Source: Isurus oxyrinchus (taxonomy: Eukaryota). Taken from it: DNA of 64,000 nt. The notes under the pieces were generated by a model. The model searched no databases and was not told the origin of the DNA. It saw only the letters and a program-made list of their open reading frames with translations. Shown here piece after piece: positions 32,161-62,817 of the stretch. Numbering within the stretch: position 1 is the stretch's first letter; each line of letters starts with the position of its first letter. The translations under genes were made by a program, and so were the position numbers. The stretch lies in contig JANJGN010000189.1 of the NCBI GenBank assembly GCA_026770705.1, positions 434,001-498,000 of the forward strand. The letters run 5' to 3'.

Positions 32161-32527
32161 CACAAAAGTGAAGCTGGTTTACATGGTAATAGTTATGGCT
32201 CGACCATTGTCAAATTCTATTCTTATAAATAAGGTCCTGCATCTTCCCGTCTGATGTTGTTTATCATCAGGGAACAGTCGCCATCTTTCAGGTCTCCAGA
32301 CAGCCGGGTCCGATGGTGGAACCGTGGTAACTCGTGACTGTGATCCTTGGAGTGAAAGGCAATGGGAGCCCAGGGAATCTGTTTCTCATTATTAAACCAG
32401 ACTCCACCTCGCAGTTGGCTTTCCAAATGTGATGGATAACTGTAATGACATGGAATCTGTGCACAGAAACCTTCCTGCGCTGCCACCTCTCGTGGAGTGT
32501 CACCTTTCCACTCTTGTGACATTCCAA
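32161..32527 (-). pseudogene. Unit A: V-set exon with two 1-nt deletions and a premature TAA just before the essential Arg
   Basis: 367 nt versus 369 nt in unit C; reads GPYL-stop where paralogs read GPYFFR / GFFFFR. Confidence 0.9.
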
Positions 32528-36645: not shown

Positions 36646-37010
36646 CAGAAACTTGAAGCTGGGTTACAGGGTAATAGTTATGGCTTGGACCATTGTCAAA
36701 TTTTATTCTGAAAAAATAAGGTCCTGCATCTTCCCATCTGATGTTGTTTATAATCAGTGAACAGTCACCATCTTTCAGGTCTCCAGACAGCCGGGTCCGA
36801 TGCCGGAACAGTGGTAACTCGTGACTGTGATCCTTGGAGTGAAAGGCTATAAAGAATCTTATCAGGACTTTGTCATTAAACCAGATTCCAATTTGTGGTT
36901 GGTTTTCCAGACACGATGGATAACTGTAATGACATGGAATCTGTACACACGAATATTCCTGCGCTGTCACCTCTCATGGAGTGTCACCTTCCACTCTTGT
37001 GACAGTCCAA
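36646..37010 (-). pseudogene. Unit B: V-set exon with an early 1-nt deletion and CGA>TGA
   Basis: SCVQIPC...GDCSL...GPYFFRIK retained, but the 5' end is out of frame relative to units A and C. Confidence 0.9.
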
Positions 37011-39372: not shown

Positions 39373-40679
39373 AAAGGAGTGAGTAAACAGGCATTAGGAA
39401 TGAGTGCGTAATTTCACAATGCGTTACAACAGAATCAAACTGTTGGCAATTCATCATGACTCTGTGATCTTTCTGTTTGCTGTTTGTTAACTTCAAATTT
39501 CTACCATGTCTCTGAGGGTTTATATTTAAAAATGCTGTTGGAGGATAAATACTAAGCATGTTCTGCACTGTCGGAGGGTCAGTATTGTTGGAGTGCTACC
39601 CTGTTAGAGGGTCAGTACTGAGGCAGTGCTGCACTGTTGGCGCGTCAGTATTGAGGTATGCTGCACTGATGGAGGATAAGCAGCGAGGGAGTGCTGCTCT
39701 GTTTGAGGGACAGCTCTGAGGGAGTTCTGCACTGTCAGAGTGTTGGCACTGAGGGAGTGCTGCACTGTCGGCCGGTCAGAACTGAGGGAGTGCTGCAGTG
39801 TTGGAGGGTCTGAACTGAGGGAGTGCTGCACTGTTGGAAGGTATAAACTGAGGGATTGCTGCACTGTAGGAGGGTCTAAACTGACGGAGTGCTGCACTGT
39901 CGGAGGGTCTGAACTGAGGGAGTGCTGCACTGTCGGAGGGTCTAAACTGAGGGAGTGCTGCACTGTCTAAAATACATTGCACAAATTGCCCAAAATTGCA
40001 TCTGATGCCTGTGTCTGATGCACACATGAAGTTCATGCATTTATCAGGAATATTTCTCTCTCTTTGTGAGCAGCAAGACAGCTTTGATATCACACCACCC
40101 ACTGGCAATTGTGTGCAGCTGCAATGTGACGTGTTTACATTGAAAATTTCCATTATAAAGATGGGCACAGGAATTCATCTGACTGGAAAAAGTAACAACA
40201 TGAAGTAATGTCTTTGAGCCAAGAATCTGGAAGCAAAATAAGAATTTTCATCCATAAGTATCTACAGAACAGGCTGAGCATTTTAATCACTTGTGTTAAT
40301 CAATGTAATTTTATTCATAACCCAAATGCTTCTTACAATCTATCGCAGCATGAAAAAGGTGCAGCATTCAGAAAGCTCATTCCAATCAAAGAACAGAGTT
40401 TAGCAACGTCACATTTCTGTTCATTCCTATTCGCCCATGTTGGCTGCACACAGCCAGATAATGCCGTGGTTATGATGTGTCCACACAGCAGGACTGGGGA
40501 GCACCAGGTATAAGGAAAAGTTTCAGCTTGCTGAGGAGAAGAAGGACAATCTCTCGTTCCAGGTTTCTCTCCGTACATTAAGAAGCAGGCATGCCGATGT
40601 TTCATTGCACTCTGTCTGCTGATGGGAGTCCGCTTGGAAATTGCTGTTTGTGCTGATGGAAAGAATAAGCTTTTCATAA

Positions 40680-41260
40680 ATCGAGGGACTGAGTACAAAC
40701 ACAGGGAGGTTATGCTGAACATGTATAAAGCTCTGGTTAGGACACAACTAGAGTATTGTGTCCAGTTCTGGTCTCCTCACTTTGGGAAGGAAGTGATGGT
40801 CCTTGAGAGGGTGGGGAGGAGATTGAGCAGAATGGGTCCAGGGATGAGGGATTTTAGCTACAGGGTTGGGTTGGAGAAGCTGGGGTTGTTCTCCTTGGAG
40901 CAAAGGAGATTGAGGGGGGATCTGATCGAGGTGTACAAGATGATGATGGGTTTAGATACGGTAGACAAAGAGAAGCTGTTGCCATTAGCTGATGGTACAA
41001 GGACTGGGGGACACAGATTGAAGGTTTTGGGCAGAGGGGGATGTGAGGAGGAACTTTTTTACACAGCGAGTGGTAATGAGCTGGAACTCGCTGCCTACGA
41101 GGATGGTGGAAGTTGAGACGATGAACGATATCAAATGGAAATTGGATGGATACTTGAGGGGAAATAAACTTGCAGAGATATGGGGATAGAGCGGGGAAAT
41201 GGGACTGACTGGATTGCTCTACAGAGAGGCAGCATGGACTCAATGGGCTGAATGGGCTCC
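40680..41260 (+). mobile_element. CR1 LINE 3' fragment, antisense within the unit C 3' UTR
   Basis: LVRTQLEYCVQFWSPH...RRLRGDLIEVYK; internally deleted copy at 28385-28700. Confidence 0.85.
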
Positions 41261-41383
41261 CACTGTGCTGGAATGCCTCTCTGATACGAAGGTGATTCTA
41301 ACCAGGACACTGACCCACAACTTAACCCAACATCACACGTTATTTGTCCGCACTGACTGACCAGATTGTTGCTGTACAAAGCT

Positions 41384-41523
41384 TCAAACAGTCTGTCGAC
41401 TTCCTTTCACTGTTTGTCTCTCCCAGACACAGACTCCAGCGATAGTGATAACCACAGCCACAAGGAATATCACAGCTCGTATTCCCAGGATCAGGATCAC
41501 GTGCAGAATCTCTCCTCCACTGT
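41384..41523 (-). CDS. Unit C: TM and short tail, (D)SGGEILHVILILGIRAVIFLVAVVITIAGVCVWERQTVKGSRQTV-stop; activating-type
   Basis: Canonical acceptor, phase 1, Arg codon at 41477-41479 inside the hydrophobic helix, 12-residue tail without Tyr. Confidence 0.85.
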
Positions 41524-42642
41524 CTAGAGAACACACAGAAAGAAATCATCACTGACTCTCCGCTTTCAATCTCTCACTCTGGCTGAACAATCAAGCTTCA
41601 TATCACTGCAACATTTGCTGTAATATTGACCCATCCACTGGGATTCAATGTGGAATGAATGTTTTCATTGTAAACACTCTAAGAGTGGACAATCGGAACT
41701 TTCCCCTTAGCGTGGAACATTGGTGAGAATGGATCATTGTGCTGTTGGACTCCCTGTCCAATGTTTCTCTCCGTCGCTGTGTACAGGATTGTGCTGTAGA
41801 AAATTCTGGAAACGTTTAGTGCAGGGTGGAAATCCATCTCGGATGCGTGTGCGAATCGGGCAGGATCGAGATGGACTCCCTCATGGACTTACAACCCCGC
41901 TTAATAAACAGTTACAATCTTTACCCAGAGAGAGGGGAGAATGTGGAACTCGTTCCCACAGGGAGTGGTTGAGGTGAATAGTAGCAAATTAGGAAGGGAA
42001 ATTGCTTGAAAAGCTGGGAGATGCAAGGGTTAAGTGCTACCGTGCCACCACTGGTGGCAAAGTGTAACTACAGCGTGACGTTTACATAGGCAATCCCCAT
42101 TATGAACAAGGACATTGGACATCATGTGAAAAATGGGCACTGGAAAGCTGAGAACTTGATGTAAGCTTTTCAACAACAGGAATTCCCTTCCTAAACCTCT
42201 CCACCTCTCTCTTACTCTCAGATACTCAAACAAAATTTCACACAAAATCACGTAAGAGGAGTTGGGACAGGTGACTGGTCAAAGGATTAGGTTTCAGGAA
42301 ACTTCTTAAAGGAGGATAGAGAGTTGGAGAGGCAGAGTGTATCTGTGAGTATCCCTGTGCATCTGAGTGTCTGTAATAGACCTTGCAATTTCCATATTCT
42401 TCCATAAATATGAAAGGGAACACAAAACCCAGAATCTAGGTCAATACTCTGGTGCAGCACTGAGGGAGGTCAGGTAACCCACAGGGCAGTATGTGATAGG
42501 GTGTTTGTTTGTGAGTGTGTCTTTGTGTGTGCTCATACATTTGGGATTGTGTGTCTGCAGGTGTCTGCTTAGGTCTGTATATTAGTGTGTATTTGTGTAG
42601 TGTTTGAACCTGAGAGTGATGTTGAAGTCTGTGCACACTCAC

Positions 42643-42796
42643 GTTCCACAGTGATGGTTATGGACACCTCCACTGCTCCATGTTCATTCTCTGCCACACA
42701 CTGATAGTCTCCAGTGTCCCTGGATGTAACGTGAGGAATCACCAACCACAGCTCATTGTTGGAACTTGTTCTGTTCATTGTGACATTGAGATGTCA
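42643..42796 (-). pseudogene. Unit C: 5'-truncated C2-set (type b) exon remnant, presumably skipped
   Basis: Same breakpoint as 30531-30684; no acceptor. Confidence 0.8.
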
Positions 42797-43118
42797 GGGC
42801 AGGACTCAACATGACAGCTCGCAGGTTTACCAACAGAAAATGAACAACAATTTATATTTAAAGGGAAGAGAGTGCTGATTGGTTGGCAAGTGGTCTCTGA
42901 TTAGAGGAGGTGTTGCCATGGAAAATAACGTGTGCAAGCTGTACAGTTTAGACAGCTTGTCACTTCATTCAGCAACAATCAAATAAAGATCAGTTAACTT
43001 CTATCGACTGTGAAGCACTTTGAGTGGCCTGAGAATATGGACACTGAGAACGGGCTGCATTGTCAGAGGGTCAGCGCTGAGGGAATTCTGATGTAGAATG
43101 AAGGGTGTCCGTACTTAC

Positions 43119-43415
43119 CTTGCACAGTTAGTACGAGGGTCCGCTCCGATGAAACAGATGGATATCTCACTCTGCAGCTGAGATTGTGTCCGTGGTGTTT
43201 GAGTGATGGGATCAGGGTCAGAACAGAAGTATAGGTCAGAGTGACACCATGCTGAGTTACAGTGTTTGAGACTGATCCAGGTACGTCAGTGGGAGTGTCC
43301 CAGGTTAAGACAGGTGCTGCTGTTCCATTGCACGTTGTGTTGAAGGTGCAGCTTACATCCACACGCTTTCCTGCAATAATTTCAGCAGGGAATATCGTGG
43401 GTTTATCTGTGAAAT
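43119..43415 (-). CDS. Unit C: C2-set exon
   Basis: 297 nt, cag acceptor and gtaagt donor, open, phase 1-1. Confidence 0.9.
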
Positions 43416-45137
43416 CTGACACACAGAGAATGGATCCTTTTAGAGAAATATAACGTGAAGCATCAGTTCAAATAGAAACCACAGTCCCACAAGAGAAAGC
43501 ACTTTTACAAGGATGATATCAGATCTGAGATGTTACAATGATCAGGAGAGCATTTCCTGTTTTGAGACTTTGGTGTTTCTGTCTCTCAGCTTAATATACG
43601 TTCACTCCGAGACACTTGAACTGATAATAGTGGGTGAGGGTGGAGGAGCAGACCAGAGTTTGGAGTGCACTACCCCATCAGTCCCTCAGCGATCTAGGTC
43701 ATTTGTTACTTGTCAATTTGTGGGAGTTTGCTGTGCGCAAATTGGTTGTTGTGTTTCCCACATTACAACAGTAACTACAATTCAGGAATCAGCGCATTGG
43801 CTGTGAAGTGATTTGGTCCGTGCTGAGGTTGTGAAAGGTGCTACATAAATGTGAATCTTTATTCTAACGATATGTCAGACTTCGAGACAGGATTAGAGAG
43901 ATCGATGGGAGTGGATAACCTGATAACATTGATGGACACAGTCAATATATTTAATCATTGATATTAAAGTGAGTATTAGAGGTTGCTTTCGGACTGAACT
44001 GGAAGCTATCACCAGGTTACCAGGTTGCATGTTAACTCGAAATTAAGAATCTAAATGGTCTAGAGGAGCATAGAACAATGGATTATATTTATATAGTGCC
44101 TATATTGTAATATAATATGCCAAGGTGCTCCACAGGAGCATTATAATAGAAAGTATGGTCCCACGCCATATAAGGAGATATTAGGTCAGATAATCGGAAC
44201 TTTGGTTGAAGAGGTGGGTTTAAAGGAGCACCTTAAAGGAGGAGATAGAAAGATGAAAGGATTTAAGTCTCAGGACCCAGGCTACTGAAGGCTTGGCCGT
44301 CCATGCTGGAGCGATGGAAATCAGGGATGCTGAATAGTCCAGAGGTAGAGGAGTGCAGAAATCTGGGAAGGCTGTAGCACAGGAGGAGATTACAGAGATA
44401 GGGAGGAAGCAAGGACAAGCATTTTAAAATCAAGACATTGCTTGTCCAGGAGCCATTCAAGGTCAGAGAGTCGAGGGGGGGATAAGGGAACGGGAGTTAC
44501 TGTTCTTTAAGACAGGGGCAGCTGAGTTTTAGATGACCCCAAGTTTACATAGGGTAGAATGTGCGAGACCAGCCAGGAGTGAGTTGGAATAACCGAGCGG
44601 GATGAGATGAGATGGAGATTGAGATCTCCGAGGATGGGAATTCAGTCGGTGCAGAGACTGAGGGAGGAAAGCAGTGAAGATATCCCGGGGAGAAGATGTT
44701 TATCATTCCTGGAGTGATCGGCGATAGAGAACGAGAATTTAGAAGGAGAGATGAGAGGGGTGGAACACGGTGAGATATTCAAAGGAGGAGAAAGTGCCAG
44801 AGGAGGTGGGGGTGGGGGTCAGGCCAAGGTGTGATTTGGTGATAAGCTCCGCACTGTCACCAGGTCAGACCTGACGGTGTGAGGGGTGGAAGGTGTAGTG
44901 GGGAGGAGACACTTCACTCAGGGGGGAGGTGTCATCACCCCTCAGCTCGGTTTACGTTACAGCTATGATGTGGATTCAATCACACACAATAAGCTCATGG
45001 ATCTGGGAGCAGAAATAGACAAATCATTAAAAATAGTGACGCTGGTTAACACGGCCAAAAAACAAGCAAATCAAACACTATTATTTCCCATTGAGTGTTG
45101 GATGTGAATTGTTGAGTAATTATAACACAGCACTTAC

Positions 45138-45506
45138 CAGAAACGTGAAGCTGGGTTACAGGGTAATAGTTGTGGCTCCGACCATTGTCAAATTCTATTC
45201 TGAAAAAAAAAAATCCTGCATCTCCCCATCTGATGTTGTTTATAATCAGGGAACAGTCGCCATCTTTCAGGTCTCCAGACAGCCGGGTCCGATGGTGGAA
45301 CCGTGGTAAATCGTGACTGTGATCCTTGGAGTGAAAGGCTATAGACGATGTATTCCATTTGTCCCTCCTCATATTCCAGATTCCGACACGTGCTTTCTCT
45401 AACAAATGTGATGGGTAATTGTAATGACATGGAATCTGTACACATGAACCTTTCTGTGCTGTCACCTCTCGTGGAGTGTTACTTTCCCATTCTTGTGACA
45501 GTCCAA
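45138..45506 (-). CDS. Unit C: intact Siglec V-set exon with essential Arg (FFFRIE, codon 45199-45201)
   Basis: 369 nt, open, phase 1-1; A-strand Trp, SCVQIPC, GDCSL, no F-strand Cys. Confidence 0.92.
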
Positions 45507-45724
45507 CTGGGGAGAGAAATATCAATATTTAAATCTTGATAATTTGTAGATCCACTAGACTCGATATCCACCCCCTCCATCACTGGGGCACAGCGGCTGC
45601 AGTGTGGACCATCTACAGGACACACAAGGAACTCCACAAGGTATCACAATGGTTAGAAGAGAATCCTGGACACAGGAGTTGACAAGATCATTCTACATTG
45701 GCTGATGGTCCTCAGGACCCTGTT

Positions 45725-48700
45725 TGTGCACAAGCCTGCTATCCAACAGAACTGAAGTTGGGGAAAATCCATTTGGAATTCCACTGTCCAGGGCATTGGG
45801 TTAACTTGCTGAGTTTGTTTTAAATCTAACATCTATTTTTGGACTGTTGCCTTAACGGGAGTGTAACTGGGAGTCAGGTTAATTAGGAATTTTAGGAGTT
45901 ATTATAGCTGTCATTGTAGTCTTATGTATGTGCTTGAAATCTTTTATTTTGATGACAAATATTTTAATTTATTTTTTTAATTCTCTAAATTTCTTGGTGG
46001 ACTTATTGCTTCTGAATTCAGTGCACACATCTCATAATAAATACAAATTGCAAAATCATTATGATAGTGTGACCACCTTTCTCTCATCGACTTTGTCTGC
46101 CTGGCACACATCACCTGCCAAGTGATAACACTGCTGTAATATGTCTTTCAGGGACAGCAGCATGACATCACTCGAGGGGAAGTGTGTCATGTGATCTATA
46201 GGAACGGCGGTTGGCTTAAGTCAGTTCTATGTGTCTATTTGTGTGTTAGGCATAAGGTCTATCTTTAAGTTCAAGTTTAGTTTGCATTTTTGTGTTTAGG
46301 TGTTTTGAAAAGATAGAATTTGACTTTAAAAGAAGCCAGCGTTCCTTTGAGGTTTTATGACTGTCAAAACAAATACAACGTGTAAGAAACTGTGCTGTTG
46401 CCTAGCAACAGTGATCCAGAGGGAGGGAACCACAGAGACAGAGAAAAACAGAAAAGGACTTTCAGTTCTGTTGAAAGGAGTTGCCAGGAGAAGCAGCAAA
46501 GGAGCGGGACAGATAGTCAGTCCCAAAGTAAAGATGAAGCCAAAACCATCGAGTGGAACAGGAGAAAGGGCCCAAGAAAACCTTCTAGTCAAATCTGGAA
46601 AAGGCCCTGTTAAGTGAAGTTAAGAGTGAGGAGCAGAAGAAGGCTTCAAGCATAAAGGGAGAAAGCAGCAGGACACAGACCTAAAGCAAAATAGGCTTGT
46701 GAGAAGCCAGAAGATCCTAGGAGACACCACAGGTTGGTGACTCATTACTACGGCCATGTGAAGCCATGGTGTTCCATTGACACGGCTGAGCATTGGAGAG
46801 ACAGGGCGTGGAAGGAAGGCTGAATGCACATGGCGATCCAGGGGGCAGGAACATGGGAAGGAGAGTTTGAAATAGTGAAAGTGGAGCCTTGTGGAAGGTG
46901 TCTGAGTGAAAGTGTCATGTTGGAGAAGATCCCAAAGAGAATTCTTGGAGAGTGGAGATTGGAAACCCTCATGTGGATATCTCAGTTCAGTGAGACTGGT
47001 TGGCTCACAGTGTAACAAGCGTCTGGGGTCAGATGAGGAGGGAGACATAGCATTTGTTTCAAGTGGGTTCTGTCACTTGATTTTAGAATGTGGTGTCCCT
47101 GACCACAGGTCGTCTATTGGTTTACATGGACTGTGTACTTAGTTTGAACATGAGAGTATAAGATAGCTATTGTAACTTGCGTTATCTTTATGAATCTGTA
47201 TATATCTGTAAATGTATAGGTCTGGGTGATGGAGTAATGTAATATAGTTTGTCTTTCCTTGTTTAATAAATGTTTTATTCTTTTGTTAGAAGTTCATCAG
47301 ATGACTCCTGTGACTCTGTTCAGTAGCTGCTCTCCACATTCCTAAATAAAAAATAAAAGTTAGGACCTATCAAGCTGAGTTCCACCCTGGGATCTGACTT
47401 GCCCAGTAGTAACATCAGCTGGGATGATAACACCATCCAGTCCAAGTTTCACTTTGGCCTGTGAGCAGAACACAGCTCACACAGTTTGGCTGCAGGTGTC
47501 TCCCAGTTTCTATCCTTGTGTATCTGTTCTCATGTCACTATTCTAAATAAATGAATCCACAATGTATTTACCTAATTCCGTATCAGTGGCTGGTGCCTTT
47601 ATATCATTATAAAAACACAACATGGTGATCAGCGGTGGCCAAACATTCTGGCAGCAAGATTCAGTACAGGTATGACGTGGTGAACAGCCTGAGATCGAGC
47701 TACATGACATGAGACGACCCTCAACGCTTTGGTCAGACCATAACAGAGACACAGCATCAGAGAGGGTTGAAATCGCAGTGTACTGACTGCTCAGGAAACC
47801 TTTGAAGACACAGTGACGGGAAAGAGCTCAAGTAAAGAGCTGGGGAGCAAACGGATCCCTCGTGGTGAGATCTGCTAGATAAGACCAAAACCTATAGCAT
47901 TGAAGAGCTACTCAAGGATCGACATAAATACGAAGTGATCCTCGCAGGTCAACAAAGCTTACAGGTCCTCAGTACAACATCAATTGTTGACACACTGACT
48001 AGAACATCCAAACCTAGTGAGACATGTGGAAGGTGTGGCCTTCTGCAGGCACCAAGGAAATGCCCAGCTTTCCACCAATCCTGCAAGGCTTGTGGCAGAA
48101 AGGGCCATTGACAGCGGCAGGGCACTAGAGCAAAGGCTCATGCAGCTACAAAGAGCCGTGCACTGATCCAAACAGACCCTACACAACGGGGAACCTTCAA
48201 GCAATAAGAATGACCATCCGCTATTCCATCAGGAACATATACATGTGGTGACTGACAAACCAGGAAATGGCGATGATGTACACGGTGAGACGAGGAGCGC
48301 TGATCGATATTCCACCTCTCACACATATCCTGGCGTGGCTTGCCAATAAATTGTGGATTGTTGTCTTTAAAGATCTCTCTGGGCACATCAAATAAACTGA
48401 AAATGTCCCATAGGGGTGGGATTTTCTGGCCCCACCCACTGCCAGGATTGTCCGGTCCAGCCGAAAGCCAATGTTTGTCCAATCTCCCACGGCAGGTCCC
48501 ATCATGACTGTGCCGGAAAACCCCAACCTAGAGTTTGTGCAACAGTTGTGCTCAACGTATTGTACAATTGTTGAACAATTTCAAACCTTTTACACCATCA
48601 ATCTCACGGAGAACAGATGCTGTCACATCACCTGCACTATTGGCCAAGATTCCAATTTTCTGCCCTGAGAAAGTTGCAACCTCCCCTTTATTGACCAAGA

Positions 48701-50700
48701 TTGACACAGGGGCAAGTGCCAACATTCCCCTCCCACAGCCCACCCCAGCAAATTTTCAAAGACATGTATCCAAGGACATGGGAGGCCATGGGGAAACCTA
48801 CTGCTGTGTACAACACTTCAACTCCATGTGCAGAATCCATAGTCCTGGGGTGCAAATACAATCAATCCTCCTGGGTGTCACAGATGTTCTACATCGTGGA
48901 GACTAAAGGCTGAGCAATTGCAAGTCTACCGGCATGCAGTGACCTCACACTAGTGACAATGCATGGAATCTGTCAGACTTCACATGGGTCAAATGCAGAA
49001 ACTACCCCATCAACTCAGTTCATGGACATAACATTGAAATATGCAGAAAGTTTCAACAGTATTGTCAGTTTCAAGGGAGCTGCTACATTACACCTGCAGG
49101 AGAATGCAAGTCTGTCAATTGATCCAGTACATTTAGCACAACAGAAATGCCAGCAGCTACAAGAGGGAACAGTGAAAAATTCTGCAGGAACTGTGGAAAT
49201 ATCATTGAAAGGGTGGCCTGATTCAACTTGACCTCATCGAGATAAGCGAGGCATCTCCCAGGGAGTCATTTTTAATGGCAGGCAGGGCATCATACCGGCA
49301 CATTTGTGATCCTATATTCTTCAACAACTTCATCCCTCACACATGGGCACAGATCACACAAGGAGACTCACAAGAGATACAGTCCCTGGCCGGGTATGAA
49401 CAATGACCTTGAAGTTGTTGTAGGGAAGTACGAGGCTTGTCAAGAGAATGAGCCAAGTCAACACAAAGAAACATTGATTCCACAGGAAATTCCTGCCTAT
49501 TCTTAGTCCAAAATCACATCTGAATCCTTTCATGTCCATGTCACTGACTTCATCGTCATCGTCGACAGCTTTACCAGATATCCCATTATTCAAAAATAGC
49601 ACAACACACCGAGCACAACTGGTGCACACACTCTAAGCACTATTTTCAGTTTATTTGGTGAACCTAGGTTCATGATTACAGATAATCTGGAATATCAATC
49701 ACACTACTTCTTCTCCTCATTACCCCAGATCTAACAGCCTAGCTGAATGAATGATTCACACAGTGAAATCCCTAATTCTCAAATGTAGACAGACCAAGCA
49801 AGATCCACACATTGCAATGTTACATCTGAGATCAACACCTACAACTGCAACTTTGTTAAATTCATTCATGGGATGTGGGAGTCACTGGTCAGGCCAGGAT
49901 TTATTACCCATCCCTAATGTAAGAGTCAACCACATTGACGTGGAGTCTGGAGTCACATGTCCACCAGACAATTTTGTTCCCTAAATGGCACTGGTGAACC
50001 AGGTGGGATTTCCAACAATGGTTTTGTGGTCATCACTAGACTTTGAATTTCATCTTTTTATTAAATTCAAATTTCATCATCTATTATGGTCGGATTTGAA
50101 CCCATATTCTCAGGACATTACCCTGGGTGTCTGAATTACTCATCTAGCAACAATACCACTACACCATCACCTCACCTTATTCCATCACTGACAGAGAACA
50201 TGTTTGGTGGGCCAGTAGTGACCAATTTCGCTACTCTTACCCATTCTACTCTCTCAGAAACCAGAGGGCAACTTTTAAAACTACAAGAGAAGATAAGGAA
50301 TGTTCATGATAAAAATGGAGGTGCAGAGTTGCCAAGTTTACAGTTGGGACAAGTTCACATCCAGGATCCCACAGAAGGTTCATGACCACCAGCCGAGGTG
50401 ACAAGGATTTGTTCAGAACCAAGGGCCTATGGAGTCAAACACACAAAGGCACAGCGGTGAGGTGGAACCGAGGATAAATCAGATCCATTCCCGCTCCTAT
50501 TTCATCGAGGAGAAGATCCCACATGAAATCAGGAACAACATCCAAGGGTGACAATCCCACAGATCACTGTGAGCAGTTAAAGACACCTCCAGACAAGGTA
50601 ACCAGCACAAGATCTGGGTGGACCAGAAGGTTAAATCCACACTTTAGAGAGTCAAATATTCAACAGTTCCGTACACTTATGTAATTGTCAATAAATATGA
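45725..50700 (+). mobile_element. Nested LTR fragments and a degenerate Ty3/Gypsy element in the unit C leader-V intron
   Basis: LTR-like ends at 46130, 47432 and ~47622 followed by PBS-like TGGTGATCAGCGG; protease DTGAS (48703); integrase remnants (WPGMNNDLE...CQE; SPHYPRSN); right boundary approximate. Confidence 0.75.
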
Positions 50701-51703
50701 ACATGATATGAGAAACCGCTTGTTCCCTGCCCTTCTGAAAGATCCATTCCTGCAGCAGGAGCCTGAAGAGTTACTGATAAGAGATTTAATTTATCGGATT
50801 GTAGAATGATCCAGAACTGAAGGAAGCCATTTGGCCCATCGAGCCTGTGCTGCGCCTTTGAAAGATCTGTCCAATTCGTCCCACTCTCACCTCTGCTCTC
50901 TCCCCCACAGCCCTGCAAAATGTCCCCTTCAAGTATTTATCCAGTTCCCCTTCTGAAAGTTCCTGTTGAATCTGCTTCCACCGGCCTTTCAGGCAGTGAG
51001 TCAATGGTCTCTCTCTGAACTGCAAAGTGATAAGTTTCAATGAAATATAAACTCTGCAGCAGATCAGAAACAATCATGATAACTCGGAATATTTGACAGT
51101 TTTACACACAGACAGCTTTGCCTCCCTTCTCTCTATCAGTTATCTTGCTCCCTTATTGAGGTATCTAGCATGGTGAGAAGGGACAGGAAGTGTGACGCTG
51201 AACAGCCTGTCTAATCTAAGAGCTTCTGTGTTGTCTTCATGGGAAGTTCTGATGAAAATCAGCAAGAGAGAAAAATTTCAGGGCATTGATATCGGAGTGC
51301 TTGCATCAGGATAGACTTCATCCCCCAGTTTTTATCCCTGCTTCTCTATTCAGCCGATTGCTCCCCTGTCACTCGCTGACCTACGCTGGCTCCCAGTCCA
51401 GCAATGACTCAATTTTCAAAATCTCTTCATTGATTCCTTATCCCTCCATCCTCCCTCTCTAATCCCTATCACTGTCACCTCCTCCAGCCCTGAAACCCTT
51501 TGAGGTCTCTGCTGTCCTGCAGTTCTGCTGTCAGACAGGGAGTCAGTGTATATCAGTGAGCACAGGGGTGATGGGTGAATGGGACTTGGTGTGAGTTTGT
51601 ACACTGGCTCACTGCTGAATCGGTTCCCTATCAGAGCTCAATAAGAATGTTCTTTTACAAAGACTATTAGCCATAAGTCTGTCCAAGCTGACGATGATAT
51701 TAC

Positions 51704-51743
51704 CTTGGAGAAGTGACAGGAGGAAGTAAGATTTCCCGATCAT
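51704..51743 (-). CDS. Unit C: leader exon MIGKSYFLLSLLQ
   Basis: ATG at 51743, gtaata donor, phase 1; acceptor at 51786-51787. Confidence 0.87.
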
Positions 51744-52193: not shown

Positions 52194-52336
52194 CCAGGAC
52201 CTGTCCGACTGCTCGCCTGGGGAGGAACTGCCCACACGCTCTGCTTGGGCTGAATGACCTCTTCCTGTGCTGCTCCCTCTGTGTGTTTAAATAGAAAGGG
52301 TTGATGTGTCACTGTGAGACAAAATGAGGAAGTGGT
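52194..52336 (-). promoter_or_regulatory. Unit C: non-coding exon 1, TATA-like TATTTAAA and PU.1-like box AAAATGAGGAAGTG
   Basis: gtaagt donor at 52193; block conserved in four copies. Confidence 0.62.
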
Positions 52337-52449
52337 TAGTCCCAAGTTAGAAAGCATCTCTTTGCCTCGCACAGTTAGAAAACTGTTAACCCTTTGTGTG
52401 CCAAGAATGTGGCTGAAGGGCCATCGACTGTTCACATGCTTTAAGCTCG

Positions 52450-53160
52450 AGGTGGTTGAACGGACCTCCTCCTGTTCCTGTGTAACAGGCTTGAGGGGCT
52501 GAATGGACCTCCTCGTGTTCCTGTGCAAGAGGCTTGTGTGGCTGAATGGGCCTCCTCCTGCTCCTGTAAAACTGCCTCGAGGGACTGAATGAACCTCCTC
52601 CTCTGCTTCTTGTGTAACAGCCTTGAGGGGCTGTTTGGGCCCCCTCATGTTCTTATATAAGATGCTCGTGTGGCTGAATGAGACTTCTCCTGTTCCTATG
52701 TAACTGACTTGAGGGGCTTAATGGACCTCCTCCTGTTCCTGTTCATCAAGCTCATGGGGCTGAAATGACCTCATTCCGTTCTGGTGTTAGAGGCTTGAAG
52801 GTCTGAATGGGCCTCCTCCTGTTGCTGTGTAACAGGCTCGAGGGGCTGAATGGGCCTCCTCCTGTTCCTGTGTAACAGGCTCGAGGGGCTGAATGGGCAT
52901 CCTCCTGTTCCTGTGTAACAGGCTCGAGGGGGCTGAATGGGCTTCCTCCTGTTCCTGTGTAACAGGCTTGAGGGGCTGAATGGGCTTCCTCCTGTTCCTG
53001 TGTAACAGGCTTGAGGGGCTGAAAGGCCTCCTCCTTTTCCTGTATAACAGGCTCATGGGGCTGAATGGCCTCCTCCTGTTCCTGTGTAACAGGCTCGAGG
53101 GGGCTGAATGGCCTCCTCCTGTTCCTGTGTAACAGGGTCGCGGGGCTGAATGTCCTCCTC
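52450..53160 (-). repeat. ~42-bp minisatellite (same family as 14735-15230)
   Basis: Tandem ggctgaatggcctcctcctgttcctgtgtaacaggctcgaggg units. Confidence 0.85.
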
Positions 53161-54496
53161 TCATTAAAAATAAATACTGCAGATGTTGTAAATCTTCAAT
53201 AAAAATGAAAAATGTTGCCTTAACTCAGCAGGTCTGGCAGCAGCTGTGGAGAGAGAAACAGAGTTTTTGCTTATAGACTCTGAAGAAGGGTCATACGGAC
53301 TCGAAATGTTAATTCTGTTTATCTCTCCTCAGATGCTGCCAGACCTACTCAGTTTCTCCAGCATTTTCTGTTTTTATTTCAGGTGCTCTCTTGTTCCTGT
53401 GTAGCAGGTTCGAGGGGGCTGAATGGCCTCCTCCTGTTCCTATTCAATGGGCAGTCAAAGTATGCATCTGATTTTGGACCTCAAACCCAATTCTCTCCTC
53501 AGGACATTGACAGATGGAGAGACCAGTTACAGATCAATGCAGGAGGATTATTTATTTTCCCAATCTTTTATCCAAGAATGTCATCAAACATAGAGCAGAA
53601 CCAGGATCAAGGATGTTGGTCTCTGTGATCTGAAACACATCGCACAGTCCACCCATCCACTCAGCCTTCAGAATGGATGCTAATTGTACTCTCCAAGTGT
53701 GAAAGACTAAAATTGAGGTTTATTGCAGCTATATCTCATTCTGTTATCAAAGCTGTCTCATCCATCCATGAACTTCTGAAGAAGGTAAACCTGCAACCAA
53801 TTTTTCACATCATAATTTCCTATGTTCACTGGCAACATCAATGTAAACATGTCACGCTGAAATGATGTCCTCCCACCAGTGGTGGCACTGTAGCACATCT
53901 GTTCTCCTCTGAGCTGCAGAGAATTTCTCAAACCTCCAAACAAATTGTTTCCCTGTTTCCCAGATTGCTGTTAGTTTTGCTGATAACGATGAAGTGTAAA
54001 ATCCAAATATATATCTGAAAATACATTTGATTACAAAATGCTGAGTAAATTTTGCCTATCTCCTCTGCTCCAATTATCCACCGATCCTGCATTTCCTGAA
54101 GTCTACACTGGCTGATGAATATTCTGTAAACACTGACTGACAGGAAGGTGAATAACAGAATGAAAATTAACTCATAATCATGGACACGGGATTGAATTTG
54201 TCCGTTCTGTCCTGGTACATCATCGAACGATATCCAAAGACATTTACAATCAGAATGGAGAGAAGGATGTTTCCAACAGGGAGGGACAATTCTGAAGGAG
54301 GATGTTCGAATTGAAACCCACAGACAATCATCCTGGATAGATCATTCCGAAGAAATTCCATCAGATTGTAACAAGAGGTTTAAATCTATTTCCTGGGAGT
54401 GAGTTCCTGTGGATATTAGGAAGGTAAGTTAGAGTTTTGAATGATTCTCCCGTTCTGTATTCTCCCTACACTGTGTGTGTCTCATTCTTGCTCAGT

Positions 54497-54613
54497 TTAT
54501 AAATTCCCATAAACAGAATCCTTGGCAAATTCACAGTTTGCGTAAAGATCATCATCTGTATCAGGATTGACTCCGCGGTTAGATTTCATTTCCAGATCCT
54601 TCTCATCTTTCTT
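54497..54613 (-). CDS. Unit D: putative terminal cytoplasmic exon, KKDEKDLEMKSNRGVNPDTDDDLYANCEFAKDSVYGNL-stop
   Basis: tttctattacag acceptor, phase 0, two Tyr motifs preceded by acidic residues, TAA stop. Confidence 0.75.
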   Translation of the reverse strand, partial: KKDEKDLEMKSNRGVNPDTDDDLYANCEFAKDSVYGNL

Positions 54614-54711
54614 CTGTAATAGAAACAGAAATGATCAGAGTGACAATCAGAGTGATCAGTGTTTAGTATTATTGATCCAAATCGAAAATTCCACCCACAA
54701 TGGATACATTA

Positions 54712-55330
54712 ATTATTGATACTGAACAGGGTTTGATTATTGATACTGAACGGGGTTTGATTATTGATTCTGAACGGGGTTTGATTATTGATTCTGAACG
54801 GGATTTGATTATTGATACTGAACGAGGTTTGATTATTGATTCTGAACAGGGTTTGATTATTGATTCTGAACGGGGTTTGATAATTGATACTGAACGGGGT
54901 TTGATTATTGATTCTGAACAGGGTTTGATTATTGATTCTGAACGGGGTTTGATAATTGATACTGAACGGGGTTTGATTATTGATTCTGAACGGGGTTTGA
55001 TTATTGATACTGAACGGGGTTTGTTTATTGATACTGATCGGGGTTTGATTATTGATACTGAACGGGGTTTGATTATTGATACTGAACGGGGTTTGCTTAT
55101 TGATATTGAATGGGGTTTGATTATTGATACTGAATGGGGTTTGATTATTGATTCTGAACGGGGTTTGATTATTGATACTGAATGGGGTTTGATTATTGAT
55201 TCTGAACGGGGTTTGATTATTGATACTGAACGGGGTTTGATTATTGATACTGAACGAGGTTTGATTATTGATTCTGAACGGGGTTTGATTATTGATTCTG
55301 ATCGGGGTTTGATTATTGATTCTGAACGGT
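54712..55330. repeat. 24-bp minisatellite (gattattgatactgaacggggttt), about 26 copies, intronic
   Basis: Highly homogeneous tandem units; explains the GLIIDTER and SIIKPRSE ORFs. Confidence 0.95.
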
Positions 55331-55491
55331 GTTGGGTGTGAGTTTGGTTGGGTTTGGGAGTGACTGTATAAAACATTGCAGATACAGGACTGGAGCAGCC
55401 ATATCAATAACCAGGCTACTGGAGCAGCTGAGAGGCTGGGGATCCTGTGGTGTGTGAGTCACCCGATTCCTCAAAGCCCAACCACGCTCAC

Positions 55492-55567
55492 AGTTTTCAT
55501 AAACAGGACCTCGATATTCATCAACACGGTGGTTCGATTTGATTCCTGCTTTCCCCTCGCCTCTCTT
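55492..55567 (-). CDS. Unit D: putative cytoplasmic exon (76 nt), paralog of the 5' part of the terminal exon; frame ambiguous
   Basis: tctattacag acceptor and gtgagc donor; phase-0 reading KRGEGKAGIKSNHRVDEYRGPVYEN; phase-2 reading REARGKQESNRTTVLMNIEVLFMKT is also open. Confidence 0.6.
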
Positions 55568-55914
55568 CTGTAATAGAGATGGAAATGGACAGAGTGACAA
55601 TCAACATGATGTGTATTCGGTGTTGGGTTTGATTATTGGGGAGAGAGTTCCAGATTTCCACTCCCCTTTGTGTGAAGAAGTGCTTCCTGACATCACCCCT
55701 GAACGGCCTGGCTCCAATCTGAAGTTCCGGCCCCCTTGTTCTGGACTCCACCCGACCCCCACCACCCACCCCCACCCGAGGGAATAGCTTCTCTCTATCG
55801 ACCCTATCGAGTGTTTAATCAGTTTGAACCCCTCAATTAGATCACTCCTTAATCTTCTAGGCCCGAGGGAATATAATCGTAGACTGTGTGTAACCTGTCT
55901 GCATAATTTAACCA

Positions 55915-56310
55915 GAAAGATGTTCTGTACAACAGACTTGAGCCTCACACCCAGATCTCAATAATCAGTAGAAATCTTTCAAAGGCATCAATCATTGGAA
56001 TCTGTCTTTATAAAGTCACAACATCAACAAAGGACGGTGTTGGTCATGGAAGTGAATTCCAATCGTTCCGTTACTTACCCAGGACCTGTCCGACTGCTCG
56101 CCTGGGGAGGAACTGCCCACACGCTCTGCTTGGGCTGAATGACCTCTTCCTGTGCTGCTCCCTCTGTGTATTTAATGAGAAAGGGTTGATGTGTCTCTGT
56201 GAGACAAAATGAGGAATTGGGGAACAATTGTGAAAACCCTTTCATTGAAACGTAGGGCCTTAGTGTTGTGCTGTAAACAAACTGTTAACCCTTTGTGTCC
56301 TGACTCTGTG
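55915..56310 (-). promoter_or_regulatory. Orphan copy of the Siglec promoter/exon-1 module inside a unit D intron
   Basis: Near-identical to 39065-39370 and 52030-52330; donor at 56078; no leader exon directly follows. Confidence 0.65.
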
Positions 56311-56921
56311 ACGTGATTCCTGTGTAAAGCTGAGCAGTCGGTGAGCGAGTTTCAATTCACTGCTCACTCCAGGTGTTGAGGTGGATCTTCTGAAGGAGCA
56401 GATGTTGCTCAGCGCTCCTTAAAAACGTGAGAGACTGAACAACGTGTAAGAGGACGAGAGAGAGAATGAGAAGGAGAGCATTAGTGGAGATAAGAGAGAG
56501 AGTGAATGAGAGAGAGAGAGAATGAGAAGGTTAGCATTAGTGGAGATAAGAGAGAGTAAATGAGAGAGTGTATGAGAAGAGAGCATTAGTGGAGGTAAGA
56601 GAGAGTGAATGAAACATGGAAAAAGGAAAGAGATTGTATTCACTAACAAAAGAAAGGTTTTCATTTATATAGCACCTTTCACAAACTCAGGAGGTCACAA
56701 GGTATCTTATGGTCCGGGTCAACACTGCCTGTTACAGGACTGAGTTGTGAAACAGTGAGTGTTGGATGAGATGTTAAACAGTAGGTGAACATCAAAACTC
56801 TTCAGGGGCTGTGAAGCGTTTTGGATTGTAAAAGGTGCTATAGAAATGCAAGTTCTTTCTATAAGGAGAGAAGGTTGAAGAAAACATGTTCAAAAACAAC
56901 CAATTAAACCTTCACACTTAC

Positions 56922-57018
56922 TTTCTCACACACTTGAAGATGAAGAATCCACTCAGTCCAACACTCAAACAGATTCCAGCTCCAAACAATCCTGCTTTCC
57001 ATTCATTGGAATCTCGCC
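56922..57018 (-). CDS. Unit D: TM exon, RDSNEWKAGLFGAGICLSVGLSGFFIFKCVRK (uncharged core)
   Basis: ttttacag / gtaagt; 97 nt, phase 1 to 2; clear paralog of 386-482. Confidence 0.87.
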
Positions 57019-57219
57019 CTGTAAAATCAGCCAATGAATGACTCCGGTACAGTTTGAGAATGGTTCCCTATGTACATGTAGTAATTCTGAACTTGTGAAG
57101 TGATATTGTCTATGCATGAAAGGTCTATACAAATAACATTTATCTATGTAATATTTATTGATAATATCCATGTACATGCAGGTTTCTATAAGGAGGATTC
57201 ACATATAACAGAGGTGCCA

Positions 57220-58240: not shown

Positions 58241-58282
58241 ATGAGCTAATAACACGAGAACGTTCAATTCTGTGTAACTCAT

Positions 58283-58564
58283 GTTCCACAGTGATGGTTA
58301 TAAATCCCTCCACTGCTCCATGTTCATTCTCTGCCGCACACTGATAGTGTCCCGTGTCCCTGGATGTAACGTGAGGAATCACCAACCACAGCTCATTGTT
58401 GGAACTTGTTCTGTTCATTGGGACATTAAGATGTCACCACATCAGGTTAGAAGCTGGGAAGCTTTCGACAGAGCAGATTATCACTGCAGCATTTCCCTCA
58501 ATTATATTGATCGATGAAGCGTTAATCATATCAAGAGAAGTAATTGATGGGTTCCGTGGTGCAT
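58283..58564 (-). pseudogene. Unit D: inactivated membrane-proximal C2-set (type b) exon
   Basis: 282 nt; CGA>TGA at 58434-58436 and donor GT>AT at 58281-58282. Confidence 0.88.
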
Positions 58565-59622
58565 CTAAATACAAATAAAGGTTTCATTGTCAGCAAACAC
58601 AGTGCACAGCAAGACTCCATGATACATCTCTCTCTATTTGGTGTCTATGTGCATTTCAAGAGTTCTTTCCTGTTTTAAGTTCCTATGTCAACTTTTATAA
58701 TGGTCACTGCCGGTGTTTTTCTTTTTGCACATTCATGGGAAGTGGATGTATCTATCTAGACCAGCATTTATTACCCATCCCTAATTGCCCTTGAGGAGGT
58801 GGTGGTGATTTTTCACACCCACAGAATTCCCAGCCTCTGACCTGCTCCTGTAGCCACAGTATTTATGGCCGGTCCAGTTAGTAGTTTGGTTAACATCCCC
58901 CAGGATGTTGATTGTGGGGGATTCAGTGATAGTAAACTCACTGAACATCAAGGGGAGATGGTTAGATTCTCTCTTGTTGGACATGATCACTGCCTGGTAA
59001 TTGTGATGCATTAATTGTCTCAGCCCAAGCTGAGTGTTATTCAGCTCTTGCTGCATGTGGATATGTAAACTGTCATGCTGTAATTACAGCCATCTACCAG
59101 AGGAGACACTGTCGGTCTAGAAGAAAAGAAAATGTCTTTCACATCATCAGGATGTTCACAGGGATTTGACAGTGGAGGAATTGCTTTAGAATAATGGGGT
59201 ATTGAGTGATAAACCTACAATTCTCTGTGCAGGGGGCTGCTCGTCCAATACAGGGTCTTGTTCAGCTGATGTCGTCAGTGTTTCAGAGCAGAATCTGGAG
59301 CAACACTCCAGTGCAGCACAGGGAGAACAGACAACTCACACATGTCTGTGTGTGTGTGAGCAAGCACACGTGTGATTCTGTGTATGTTTCCTTCTGTGTG
59401 TGTGCATGCAGGTGTACACACCTGTGCACATGTGGGATTGCGNNNNNNNNNNNNNNNNNNNNNNNNNNNNNNNNNNNNNNNNNNNNNNNNNNNNNNNNNN
59501 NNNNNNNNNNNNNNNNNNNNNNNNNNNNNNNNNNNNNNNNNNNNNNNNNNNNNNNNNNNNNNNNNNNNNNNNNNNNNNNNNNNNNNNNNNNNNNNNNNNN
59601 NNNNNNNNNNNNNNNNNNNNAC

Positions 59623-59904
59623 ATTCCACAGTGATGGTTCTGAATCCCTCCACTGCTCCATGTTCATTCTCTGCCACACACTGATAGTCTCCAGTGTCCC
59701 TGGATGTAACGTGAGGAATCACCAACCACAGCTCATTGTTGGAACTTGTTCTGTTCATTGGGACATTAAGATGTCGCCACGTCAGGTTAGAAGCTGGGAA
59801 GCTCTCGACAGAGCAGATTATCACTGCAGAATTCTCCTCAATTATATTGATCGATGAAGCATTAATCATTTCAAGAGAAGTAAATGAGAGATCCTGTGGT
59901 GAAT
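59623..59904 (-). CDS. Unit D: C2-set (type b) exon
   Basis: 282 nt, open, phase 1-1, SPQDLSF...IICSVESFPASNLTW...GDYQCVAENEHG. Confidence 0.88.
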
Positions 59905-60736
59905 CTAAGAACAAATCAAGTGTTTAAAAGTGAGCAAGCTAAGTGCACAGCAAGACTTCATGCATCATCTCTCTGTATCTGATGTCCGAATGCATTTCCA
60001 GATAACTTCCCTCAGTATAAGGTCTTATGGCACATTTATAATTGACACTGCTTATGTAAACTGTCACACTGCAGTTGCATTCTCCCACCAGTAGAGGTGT
60101 TGCCCATCTAGAATGAAAGAAGTTTGCTTTCACATCCTCAGGATTTCGCAAAGGGCTTGACAGGCAATGTTTGATTGAGGGAGCACTGAGGGGTAAATCT
60201 ACAATTCTCTGTTCAGGAGGTTGCTCATCCAATTCAGGGTCTTGCTGATCTGGAGTTTACCGTCCTTCAACACAGAATCGGAGCTGATACCGAGACTCCA
60301 GTGCAGCACTGAGAACTCTCGCGTGTGTATGTGTGTGTTTGTGTTACTGCACATGTGAGTGTGTTTGTGTGTGTATGCACACATGTAGCTGTGTGTGCGC
60401 ATGCACGCGTGTCTGTGTGTCTACGTCTGTACATGAGTGAGAGTACGTGTATGTGTGTGTCTATGTGTGGGCATGAATATGTGTGTGTGTTTGAGATGGG
60501 TGTGTATTTTCCTGTGTATGTGTTTGTATGTATATGACTGTCTGTGTATACTTANNNNNNNNNNNNNNNNNNNNNNNNNNNNNNNNNNNNNNNNNNNNNN
60601 NNNNNNNNNNNNNNNNNNNNNNNNNNNNNNNNNNNNNNNNNNNNNNNNNNNNNNNNNNNNNNNNNNNNNNNNNNNNNNNNNNNNNNNNNNNNNNNNNNNN
60701 NNNNNNNNNNNNNNNNNNNNNNNNNNNNNNNNNNAC

Positions 60737-61018
60737 ATTCCACAGTGATGGTTATGAACCCCTCCACTGCTCCATGTTCATTCTCTGCCACACACTGATA
60801 GTCTCCAGTGTCCCTGGATGTAACGTGAGGAATCACCAACCACAGCTCATTGCTGGAACTTGTTCTGTTCATTGGGACATTAAGATGTCGCCACGTCAGG
60901 TTAGAAGCTGGGAAGCTCTCGACAGAGCAGATTATCACTGCAGAATTCCCCTCAATTATATTGATCGATGAAGCATTAATCATATCAAGAGAAGTAATTG
61001 AGAGATTCTGTGGAGCAT
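60737..61018 (-). CDS. Unit D: C2-set (type b) exon
   Basis: 282 nt, open, canonical acceptor, GT donor abutting an N gap. Confidence 0.88.
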
Positions 61019-61766
61019 CTAAAAATAAATAAAGATTTTAATGTGAGCAAGCATAGTGCACAGCAAGCCTCCATGCATCATCTCTCTGTATCTGATGTTG
61101 GAATGCATTTCCAGGTACCTTCCCTCAGGAAAAAGTACTGTCACATTTATAATGGGCACTTCCTATGTAAACTGTCACACTGCAGTGGCATTCTCCCACC
61201 AGTGGAGTTGCTGTCCATCTAGAATGAAAGAAACATCCTTTAACACTCTCAAGATGCCCCCAAGAGATTGAAAGCCCGTGAATTGTATTTGATTGATGGA
61301 GCACTGAGGGGTAAATCTACAATTCTCCGTTCAGGAAGTTGCTCATCCAATTCAGGGTCTTGCTGATCTGGAGTTTACCTTCCTTCAACACAGAAACAGA
61401 GCTGATACCAAGACTCCAGTGCAGCACTGAGAGAGGAGAGGGATCTCACACTTGTGTGTGTGTGTGTGTATTTCTGCACAAGTGAGTTTGTATTTGTGTG
61501 TATGCGCGTGTCTGTCTGCGCATGTGTGGGCACGCGTGTGTATGTGGGTCTTGTGTGTACATCTGTGCTTGAGTGAGTGTGTGTGTATACGTGTGTCTAC
61601 GTGTGCGCATGAATGATTGTATGTGTGAGTTGAGTTTGTGTGTGTTTCTGTGTATGTGTTTGAACGTATGTTTGTGTGTAAGCGTGCTTGTTTGTGTCTA
61701 CACATGAGTGTTTTTGCATGTGTGTGTGTGTTTGTGTGTGTGATGTTGAAGTCTGTGTACACTCAC

Positions 61767-62048
61767 ATTCCACAGTGATGGTTATGAACCCTTCCACTGC
61801 TCCATGTTCATTCTCTGCCACACACTGATAGTCTCCAGTGTCCCTGGATGTAACGTGAGGAATCACCAACCACAGCTCATTGTTGGAACTTGTTCTTTTC
61901 ATTGGGACATTAAGATGTCGCCACGTCAGGTTAGAAGCTGGGAAGCTCTCGACAGAGCAGATTATCACTGCAGAATTCCCCTCAATTATATTGATCGATG
62001 AAGCATAAATCATACCAAGAGAAATAATTGAGACATTCTGTGGAGCAT
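61767..62048 (-). CDS. Unit D: C2-set (type b) exon
   Basis: 282 nt, open, tag acceptor and gtgagt donor. Confidence 0.9.
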
Positions 62049-62724
62049 CTAAAAACATATAAAGATTTTAATGTGAGCAAATATAGTGCACAGCAAGACT
62101 CCATGCATCATGTCTCTGTATCTGATGTCTGAATGCATTTCCAGATACCTTCTCTCAGGATAAGAACTTATTTCACATTTACAATGGGCACTGCCTATGT
62201 AAACTGTCACACTGCAGTTACATTCTCCCACCAGTGGAGGTGTCCATCTAGAATGCAGGAAACTCCCTTTCAGATCCTCAGGATGTCCCCAAGGGCTTCA
62301 AAGGCAATGAATTGTATTTGACCAATGGCGCACTGAGGGGTAAATCTACAATTCACTGTTCAGGAGGTTGCTCCAGCCAGTTCAGTGTCTTGATGATCGG
62401 GAGTTTACCTTTCATCAACAAAGATTCGGAGCTGATACTGAGACTCCAGTGCAGCACTGGGAGAGGAGAGGGAACCCACATGTTTTTGTGTGTGTATGTG
62501 TGTGTTGGCTTGTGTGTGTATGTTTCTGTAAAATAAGGATCTGTGTGTGTGCACGCACTCATGTGTGTTTGTTTGTGTGNNNNNNNNNNNNNNNNNNNNN
62601 NNNNNNNNNNNNNNNNNNNNNNNNNNNNNNNNNNNNNNNNNNNNNNNNNNNNNNNNNNNNNNNNNNNNNNNNNNNNNNNNNNNNNNNNNNNNNNNNNNNN
62701 NNNNNNNNNNNNNNNNNNNNNNAC

Positions 62725-62817
62725 ATTCCACAGTGATGGTTATGAACCCCTCAATTATATTGATCGATGAAGCATTAATCATATCAAGCGAAGTAAATGA
62801 GAGATTCTGTGGTGCAT
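62725..62817 (-). CDS. Unit D: internally deleted C2b exon (93 nt), APQNLSFTSLDMINASSINIIEGFITITVE, a putative linker
   Basis: In-frame 189-nt deletion between two GAGGGG repeats; splice sites retained. Confidence 0.7.

Follow-up and report, generated by a model that had tools for sequence, protein, structure and literature searches.

Siglecs are defined by a V domain that holds three cysteines and lacks the F-strand cysteine, together with a first C2 domain that also has three. Human CD33 (Siglec-3) is inhibitory and has a tail with an immunoreceptor tyrosine-based inhibitory motif (ITIM); the charged residue in the transmembrane (TM) segment is Arg in Siglec-14 and Lys in Siglec-15. The concept of paired receptors and the coupling of primate Siglecs to DAP12 are laid out in the portion of PMC6288428 available to us, where the case for paired Siglec receptors has so far been argued mainly from primates. 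Here we describe unit C, a gene of four exons on the minus strand (41384-51743) of a 64,000-nucleotide (nt) stretch of DNA from Isurus oxyrinchus (contig JANJGN010000189.1, positions 434,001 to 498,000 of the forward strand; hereafter the window, to which all coordinates refer). It belongs to a minus-strand array of four units, in the order D, C, B, A. We consider it reasonably probable that unit C is an intact receptor gene of the activating type, paired with unit D, and a member of a shark-specific expansion of Siglec-family receptors. The predicted gene models establish the reading frame and domain types of unit C, the Arg in its TM segment, the half-exon remnant of a further immunoglobulin (Ig) domain and the presence of an ITIM-bearing neighbour.

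Gene model and domain build of unit C

Translated exon by exon, unit C amounts to 846 nt, that is, 281 codons and a stop. Every exon junction is in phase 1, and the borders are canonical ag/gt throughout. An earlier note, made from the DNA letters of this stretch, had proposed an in-frame four-exon model of 846 nt with canonical splice sites, and its bounds and lengths stand as given there. The exons are as follows.

51743-51704, minus strand: leader exon, 40 nt, ATG...CAAG/gt, encoding MIGKSYFLLSLLQ plus 1 nt
45506-45138, minus strand: V-set exon, 369 nt, phase 1-1, ag/TT...CTG/gt
43415-43119, minus strand: C2-set exon, 297 nt, ag/AT...AAG/gt
41523-41384, minus strand: TM/tail exon, 140 nt, ag/AC...TGA, encoding SGGEILHVILILGIRAVIFLVAVVITIAGVCVWERQTVKGSRQTV, then the stop

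The 13-residue leader recurs in a second exact copy at 33428-33390, and an identical leader opens the annotated shark proteins P0001, P0002, P0003, P0006, P0013 and P0014. Past the stop, the nearest AATAAA on the minus strand lies at 40310-40315, about 1.07 kb downstream. The domain and homology searches described below were run exon by exon, not on the joined 281-residue product.

Both extracellular domains find their matches within the Siglec family. The V exon is recognised by the Pfam profiles V-set (1.5e-10) and Ig_CD22, the CD22-type first Ig domain (9.6e-7), and a phmmer comparison with the PDB places sialoadhesin (2.8e-10), Siglec-5 (4.3e-10) and MAG (5e-9) at the top, followed by Siglec-8, CD33 (4.9e-8), Siglec-7, Siglec-10, Siglec-15 and CD22; Siglecs make up 19 of the 29 best rows. 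The C2 exon matches Pfam C2-set_2 (3.3e-9) and, in the PDB, domain 2 of MAG and of CD33 (1.9e-5 for the latter). Cysteines of the V domain stand at positions 21 and 26 (GSCVQIPC) and 84 (DGDCSL), with F101 at the canonical position of the F-strand Cys, and the C2 domain has three cysteines in VSCTFNTTC and LSCRV. The Siglec cysteine pattern claimed earlier is thus present in V and C2, and the disulfides that go with it, one kind within a sheet and one between domains, are predicted from sequence. Taken together, these matches support the assignment of the predicted V and C2 domains of unit C as Siglec type.

The F-strand Arg and the A-strand Trp expected to contact sialic acid are also in place. 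Arg102 of the F strand (AGA, 45201-45199; FFFFRIE) falls opposite the Arg of the sialoadhesin motif FRFE and of the Siglec-5 motif FFRVE, and Trp6 of the A strand aligns with sialoadhesin Trp2; the G-strand partner is probably Tyr113, the PDB alignments stopping at residues 107-113. Column counts were taken from 36 aligned rows, namely the unit C query and 35 relatives. The F-strand Arg, described as essential in the earlier note, is kept in 29 of these rows, Trp6 in 27 and Cys84 in every one; at position 113, 32 rows have Tyr or Phe.

Relatives of the V domain are numerous. In a representative library, in which proteins within 50% identity of a listed entry are folded under that entry, the V search returned 926 proteins at E <= 1e-3 and 27 at <= 1e-30. 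The 10 top relatives that were looked up by name all come from sharks or rays and carry automatic names such as "CD33-like" and "Siglec-12/13/14"; more distant ones, from bony fish and a turtle, are named as sialoadhesin-like, CD22-like, MAG-like or Siglec-6/10/14. Carcharodon carcharias (75%) and Cetorhinus maximus (71%) supply the best V matches, the word search with the 122-residue V query covering proteins of 67-213 residues only. As to the CD33-related subgroup, relatives bear CD33-like automatic names, yet the V domain itself scores sialoadhesin, Siglec-5 and MAG about equally.

What sets the predicted receptor apart from an inhibitory one is its TM/tail exon. The string ILGI-R-AVIF claimed for the TM segment is read there directly, with the Arg encoded by CGA at 41479-41477. 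This Arg is residue 11 of a hydrophobic stretch of about 28 residues, ILHVILILGIRAVIFLVAVVITIAGVCVW, and the cytoplasmic tail that follows, ERQTVKGSRQTV, has 13 residues and no Tyr. Among 152 stored relatives, three match the TM exon at E < 1e-16.

P0085, Scyliorhinus torazame: TM exon identity 84%; C2 joined straight to TM
P0009, Scyliorhinus torazame: TM exon identity 80%; two C2b domains ahead of TM
P0020, Chiloscyllium punctatum: TM exon identity 83% over 41 residues; V, C2, four C2b, TM

The motif ILILGIRA is invariant in all three, so that the activating type claimed for the TM segment is upheld by the Arg within the helix, the short tail without Tyr and the retention of the motif in three shark proteins. 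In the same proteins the V domain is 55-62% identical to that of unit C, as against 80-84% for the TM exon; the TM anchor is better conserved than the V domain, and this is real evidence for constraint on the TM Arg. An argument made earlier from the same residue, that a mutable CGA codon had been retained in both copies, is correct in that A and C do share CGA. As an argument for constraint it is weak, because, up to an 11-nt deletion in A, only 2 letters separate the TM exon of A from that of C. At about 40% of the depth of the predicted helix, the Arg is compatible with either adaptor class, DAP12 or FcR-gamma. A build of this kind is already found among the automatic annotations of other sharks, and on these predicted proteins the two-Ig layout with an Arg in the TM segment is not peculiar to unit C.

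Based on known Siglecs and on charge-coupled immunoreceptors, as treated in the accessible part of PMC6288428, we propose the following model. The V domain would bind a sialylated ligand through Arg102, assisted by Trp6 and the aromatic residue of the G strand. Within the membrane, the Arg would pair with the TM Asp of an adaptor of the DAP12 or FcR-gamma type that carries an immunoreceptor tyrosine-based activation motif. Through this pairing, binding of the ligand would activate the cell rather than inhibit it, in opposition to gene D, which is of the ITIM type.

Does the V domain necessarily read sialic acid? Several observations weigh against it. The F-strand Arg is absent from two of the three relatives that share the Arg-containing TM segment, being Ser in P0085 (YHFSIEF) and Lys in P0020 (YYFKVEF), a situation reminiscent of primate Siglecs, in which, according to PMC6288428, the essential Arg has been lost repeatedly. 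Positions 98-99 of unit C are FF where the family mostly has PY, F occurring there in 1 and 5 of the 36 rows, respectively. Moreover, the C-C' loop (45343-45409 in C) is very different among A, B and C, amid a V exon of which the remainder is about 90% alike. A receptor that is expressed but has lost sialic acid binding, or never had it, and that engages another ligand, for example one from a pathogen, via its variable loops would account for these features and overlaps with the reading we prefer. We regard it as unlikely, given that unit C itself retains Arg102, Trp6, the three-Cys pattern and Tyr113, and continue with the sialic acid-binding, activating receptor as our working model.

Loss of the C2b exon and the C2-to-TM joint

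Between the C2 and TM exons of unit C lies what is left of another Ig exon.

42643-42796, minus strand: remnant of a C2b (I-set type) exon, 3' half only, with TGA at 42796-42794 and an intact gt donor after 42643

The remnant matches Pfam I-set at 2.3e-8, over profile positions 50-90 of 90. Six copies homologous to it occur in the window: four full exons of about 280 nt in unit D, and truncated ones in A and C. The copies in A and C lose homology to the full exons of D at one shared point, 42795/6, where the TGA stands; the fourth C2b copy of unit D has a TGA at that same codon. Since only the 3' half of the exon remains, the loss is secondary, and since the truncation falls at one point in both A and C, the deletion predates the duplication that gave rise to them. 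Longer shark proteins with C2b domains ahead of the same TM exon lead to the same conclusion, that the compact layout is secondary, and also indicate that it is not unique to unit C. These comparisons show that a deletion took away the 5' half of the final C2b exon before the A/C duplication and so produced the predicted two-Ig layout. A secondary loss of C2b was what the earlier note had claimed, and the half-exon remnant, the full exons of D and the layouts of P0009 and P0020 agree in confirming it.

Inspection by eye of the remnant also turned up cryptic in-phase acceptors (AG before GAC, GAG, GCA and GTG codons). We discarded them as unsupported, since they lack a pyrimidine tract and the RNA contigs contain no joint of this kind.

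Is the remnant skipped in transcripts? A search of public sequencing runs found 22, all as contigs, of which 1 is on record as RNA. Contigs of four runs (X1, X5, X6 and X7), one per study, were placed on 41200-46900, a range outside which the leader-V joint lies. A joint of 43119 to 41523 with CT..AC ends, by which C2 is connected straight to TM, is present in contigs of X1, X6 and X7, with sides of 31, 28 and 58 letters, and in these three of the four runs the skip form has a depth of 146-400. The X5 run differs and weighs on the other side: a 674-nt contig joins 42643 to 41523 and extends upstream to 42906, and X5 has neither the skip form nor any depth over 45211-45592, which is most of the V exon.

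The earlier note had named transcripts that include the TGA-containing remnant as a finding that would overturn its model, and one such contig exists, in 1 of 4 runs and about 95-96% like unit C, next to the skip form in 3 of 4. Taken at face value, it would point to a main product that retains the remnant, or the intron preceding it, and ends at the TGA, yielding a secreted V-C2 protein or a message subject to nonsense-mediated decay; the canonical donor kept by the remnant fits such a product. We nevertheless think this very unlikely as an account of the main product. The X5 contig departs from unit C at 12 of 264 and at 8 of 324 letters, shows 9 gap letters besides and is 1 nt short within the TM exon; by our reading, no in-phase acceptor stands ahead of the remnant; and the skip form predominates among the runs. 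Direct joining of C2 to TM thus remains our preferred structure for the product of unit C.

Paralogous units, the intron insertion and transcription

The neighbours of unit C bear both on its proposed pairing and on its state of preservation.

52194-57019 and 58281-63367, minus strand: unit D, with C2 and four or more C2b exons in tandem, spaced by about 1.1 kb
57010-56921, minus strand: unit D TM exon, uncharged
56171-56079, minus strand: unit D tail exon, with a second copy at 52274-52194, just upstream of the unit C leader
54613-54500, minus strand: unit D last exon, containing SVYGNL, in agreement with the ITIM consensus
36646-37008, minus strand: unit B V exon, with a 1-nt loss and a stop after 13 codons
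36104-35973, minus strand: half copy of the C2 exon in unit B, preceding B's full C2 exon
32163-32525, minus strand: unit A V exon, its frame lost one codon before the F-strand Arg
28680-28900, minus strand: unit A TM/tail region, its stop removed by an 11-nt deletion

This arrangement shows unit C, with its predicted Arg-containing TM segment, to be the activating-type partner of gene D, which lies directly upstream and is of the multi-Ig, ITIM type, in the manner of paired receptors. The comparison of the pair was made on C2, the V exon of unit D falling outside the window. The C2 exon is about 99% identical in DNA across A, B, C and D, and between C and D the encoded protein is 96.9% identical. 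Similarity between C and D amounts to 93% over the C2 exon and about 250 nt of upstream intron and falls to 74% in the adjoining flank, and this block-like pattern fits gene conversion. Three runs of N (59443-59620, 60555-60734 and 62580-62722) lie right behind C2b exons of unit D, at the starts of the introns that follow.

A second difference among the units concerns the intron between leader and V.

45749..51563, no strand assigned: extra sequence of about 5.3 kb, compared with unit A, in the leader-V intron of unit C; debris of degraded retroelements, along with other repeats

The homologous flanks of this intron are separated by 5816 nt in C and by 478 nt in A. When 10 stop-free pieces of the intron were scanned with Pfam, a single sub-threshold match resulted, to Integrase_H2C2 (49276-49503, plus strand; E 7e-4; 20.1 bits, the cutoff being 25.5). 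The same 10 pieces yielded no reverse transcriptase, and the insertion contains no long terminal repeat-like repeat of 60 nt or more and no open reading frame above 150 residues. By eye, DTGAS and CCHC-like strings can be made out on its plus strand and an integrase-core-like string on its minus strand. Of the "~5-kb Gypsy insertion" described earlier, the insertion itself, at 5.3 kb, is real; its identity as Gypsy was put into question by the single sub-threshold match and by the missing reverse transcriptase and terminal repeats. We describe it as degraded retroelement debris, for which a Gypsy origin is plausible.

Is unit C a living gene, or a silent and dying copy whose frames are open only because it is young? 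In the latter case the spliced contigs would have their source in paralogues at other places of the genome, or in related species. A number of observations weigh against an intact and transcribed unit C. All contigs over 43184 or 45310 carry the letter of the paralogues A, B and D, not the one private to unit C, and its C-C' loop is found in no contig either: in those of X6 and X7 the segment 45343-45409 is replaced by other letters, and the X1 contig leaves unit C at 45359 with letters resembling the loop of unit A. The V-to-C2 joint (43415/45138) does appear in the same three runs as the skip form, with sides of only 18, 23 and 23 letters, under our 31-letter rule. The runs are RNA only by guess, and the DNA runs, from an organism coded B, contain no more than 0.35 of the words, so that none of them resembles the source individual. 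The adjacent units A and B are broken in their V exons by frameshifts, A being probably a dead twin of unit C to judge from its lesions; intron 1 of unit C has received the 5.3-kb insertion; and the V frame of unit C itself passes through a homopolymer of 11 T (45203-45213). Unit B has a T run of equal length, and the RNA contigs, which may or may not span exactly that place, show no indel row there.

Other evidence speaks for unit C. Its four exons are open and bordered by canonical sites. Conservation with units A and B covers its leader and some 450 nt upstream of it. Where unit C can be told from A (43333 and 43257) and from D (43280 and 43161), the C2 contigs have its letters, and compared with unit C the X7 contig over the TM exon shows 3 deviating letters and 1 gap over 162, whereas unit A differs by its 11-nt deletion and more. 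On balance we find a silent copy rather unlikely, though it is the alternative to be taken most seriously. The contigs may derive from paralogues or relatives, as they are without the private letters and the loop of unit C. Genes of its build are transcribed and spliced from C2 to TM in sharks close to the source of the window; transcription of copy C itself is a prediction. We retain the intact receptor gene as our reading of unit C.

The wider surroundings of the array place it beside hepcidin. A hepcidin mature-peptide exon (20588-20758, plus strand; Pfam Hepcidin 4e-7, above the cutoff), with 8 Cys in its last 23 residues, sits among the Siglec-like genes. In mammals, CD22 is adjacent in the HAMP/MAG neighbourhood. 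According to PMC4453067, USF2, MAG and the FFAR genes are neighbours of the mammalian hepcidin gene HAMP. The plus strand of the window also has a distant V-like exon at 13074-13364, 29% identical to the V domain of unit C, and TM and Tyr-tail exons at 367-2734 that resemble P0026. These exons suggest a putative neighbour gene of the same family, oriented head-to-head or tail-to-tail.

Comparison with known receptors

Our search of the literature by title and abstract, subscription journals lying outside it, found no paper, among those listed, that treats Siglec receptors of sharks. The accessible part of the whale shark genome paper names Siglecs once, in a list of Ig families. The closest known counterpart of unit C is XP_072325011.1 (P0085) of Scyliorhinus torazame, and the NCBI predictions named "CD33-like" or "Siglec-12/13/14-like" are of its kind. 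As in unit C, C2 is followed directly by the Arg-containing TM segment and the tail ends in KGSRQTV; identity is 84% over the TM exon and 89% over C2. Unlike unit C, it is a 219-residue model whose V domain is truncated and has Ser at the site of the F-strand Arg; its species belongs to another order of sharks, and its name is automatic only. The practical value of unit C is limited to the extent that the same build stands unremarked in the automatic annotation of other sharks. Two questions could be asked of this compact receptor: is sialic acid recognition through the F-strand Arg ancestral to all jawed vertebrates, and with which adaptor does an Arg-TM receptor of a shark work?

Among the mammalian receptors, CD33 shares the V-C2-TM layout, and its structure matches both domains of unit C; the predicted tail of unit C, unlike that of CD33, has no Tyr. 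Siglec-15 is likewise built of V and one C2 with a charged TM residue, and it signals through an adaptor. Its structure (PDB 7zoz) matches the V domain at 3.9e-6, which ranks well below sialoadhesin, Siglec-5 and MAG, and the two-Ig layout of unit C is secondary.

What is the relevance of the arrangement of C and D? We see in it the most interesting side of this locus, namely that a cartilaginous fish has an activating-type and an inhibitory-type gene arranged as a pair, the C2 exon being homogenised between them. If unit C is expressed, cartilaginous fish would have charge-coupled activating receptors of Siglec type beside their inhibitory twins, with birth, homogenisation and death of copies still in progress. 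We go a step further only tentatively, in a proposal that we find quite possible without being ready to lean on it. Sharks may possess their own system of paired activating and inhibitory Siglecs, situated in a neighbourhood of hepcidin/MAG type and not in the CD33-related cluster. Gene conversion would equalise the C2 domains, and perhaps the V domains, of the Arg-TM and ITIM genes while the C-C' loop diversifies, and activating copies would repeatedly be made, by deletion of C2b, and lost again, as in A and B.

The primate pairs Siglec-5/Siglec-14 and Siglec-11/Siglec-16 are the nearest parallel to C and D, in that an activating member with a positively charged TM residue stands beside an ITIM-bearing member and part of the ectodomain is nearly identical between the two. 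They differ from the shark pair, which is of separate origin and lies beside hepcidin rather than in the CD33-related cluster. If the proposal holds, the "counter-trap" logic put forward for primate Siglec-5/14 would either be as old as jawed vertebrates or have been reinvented in cartilaginous fish.

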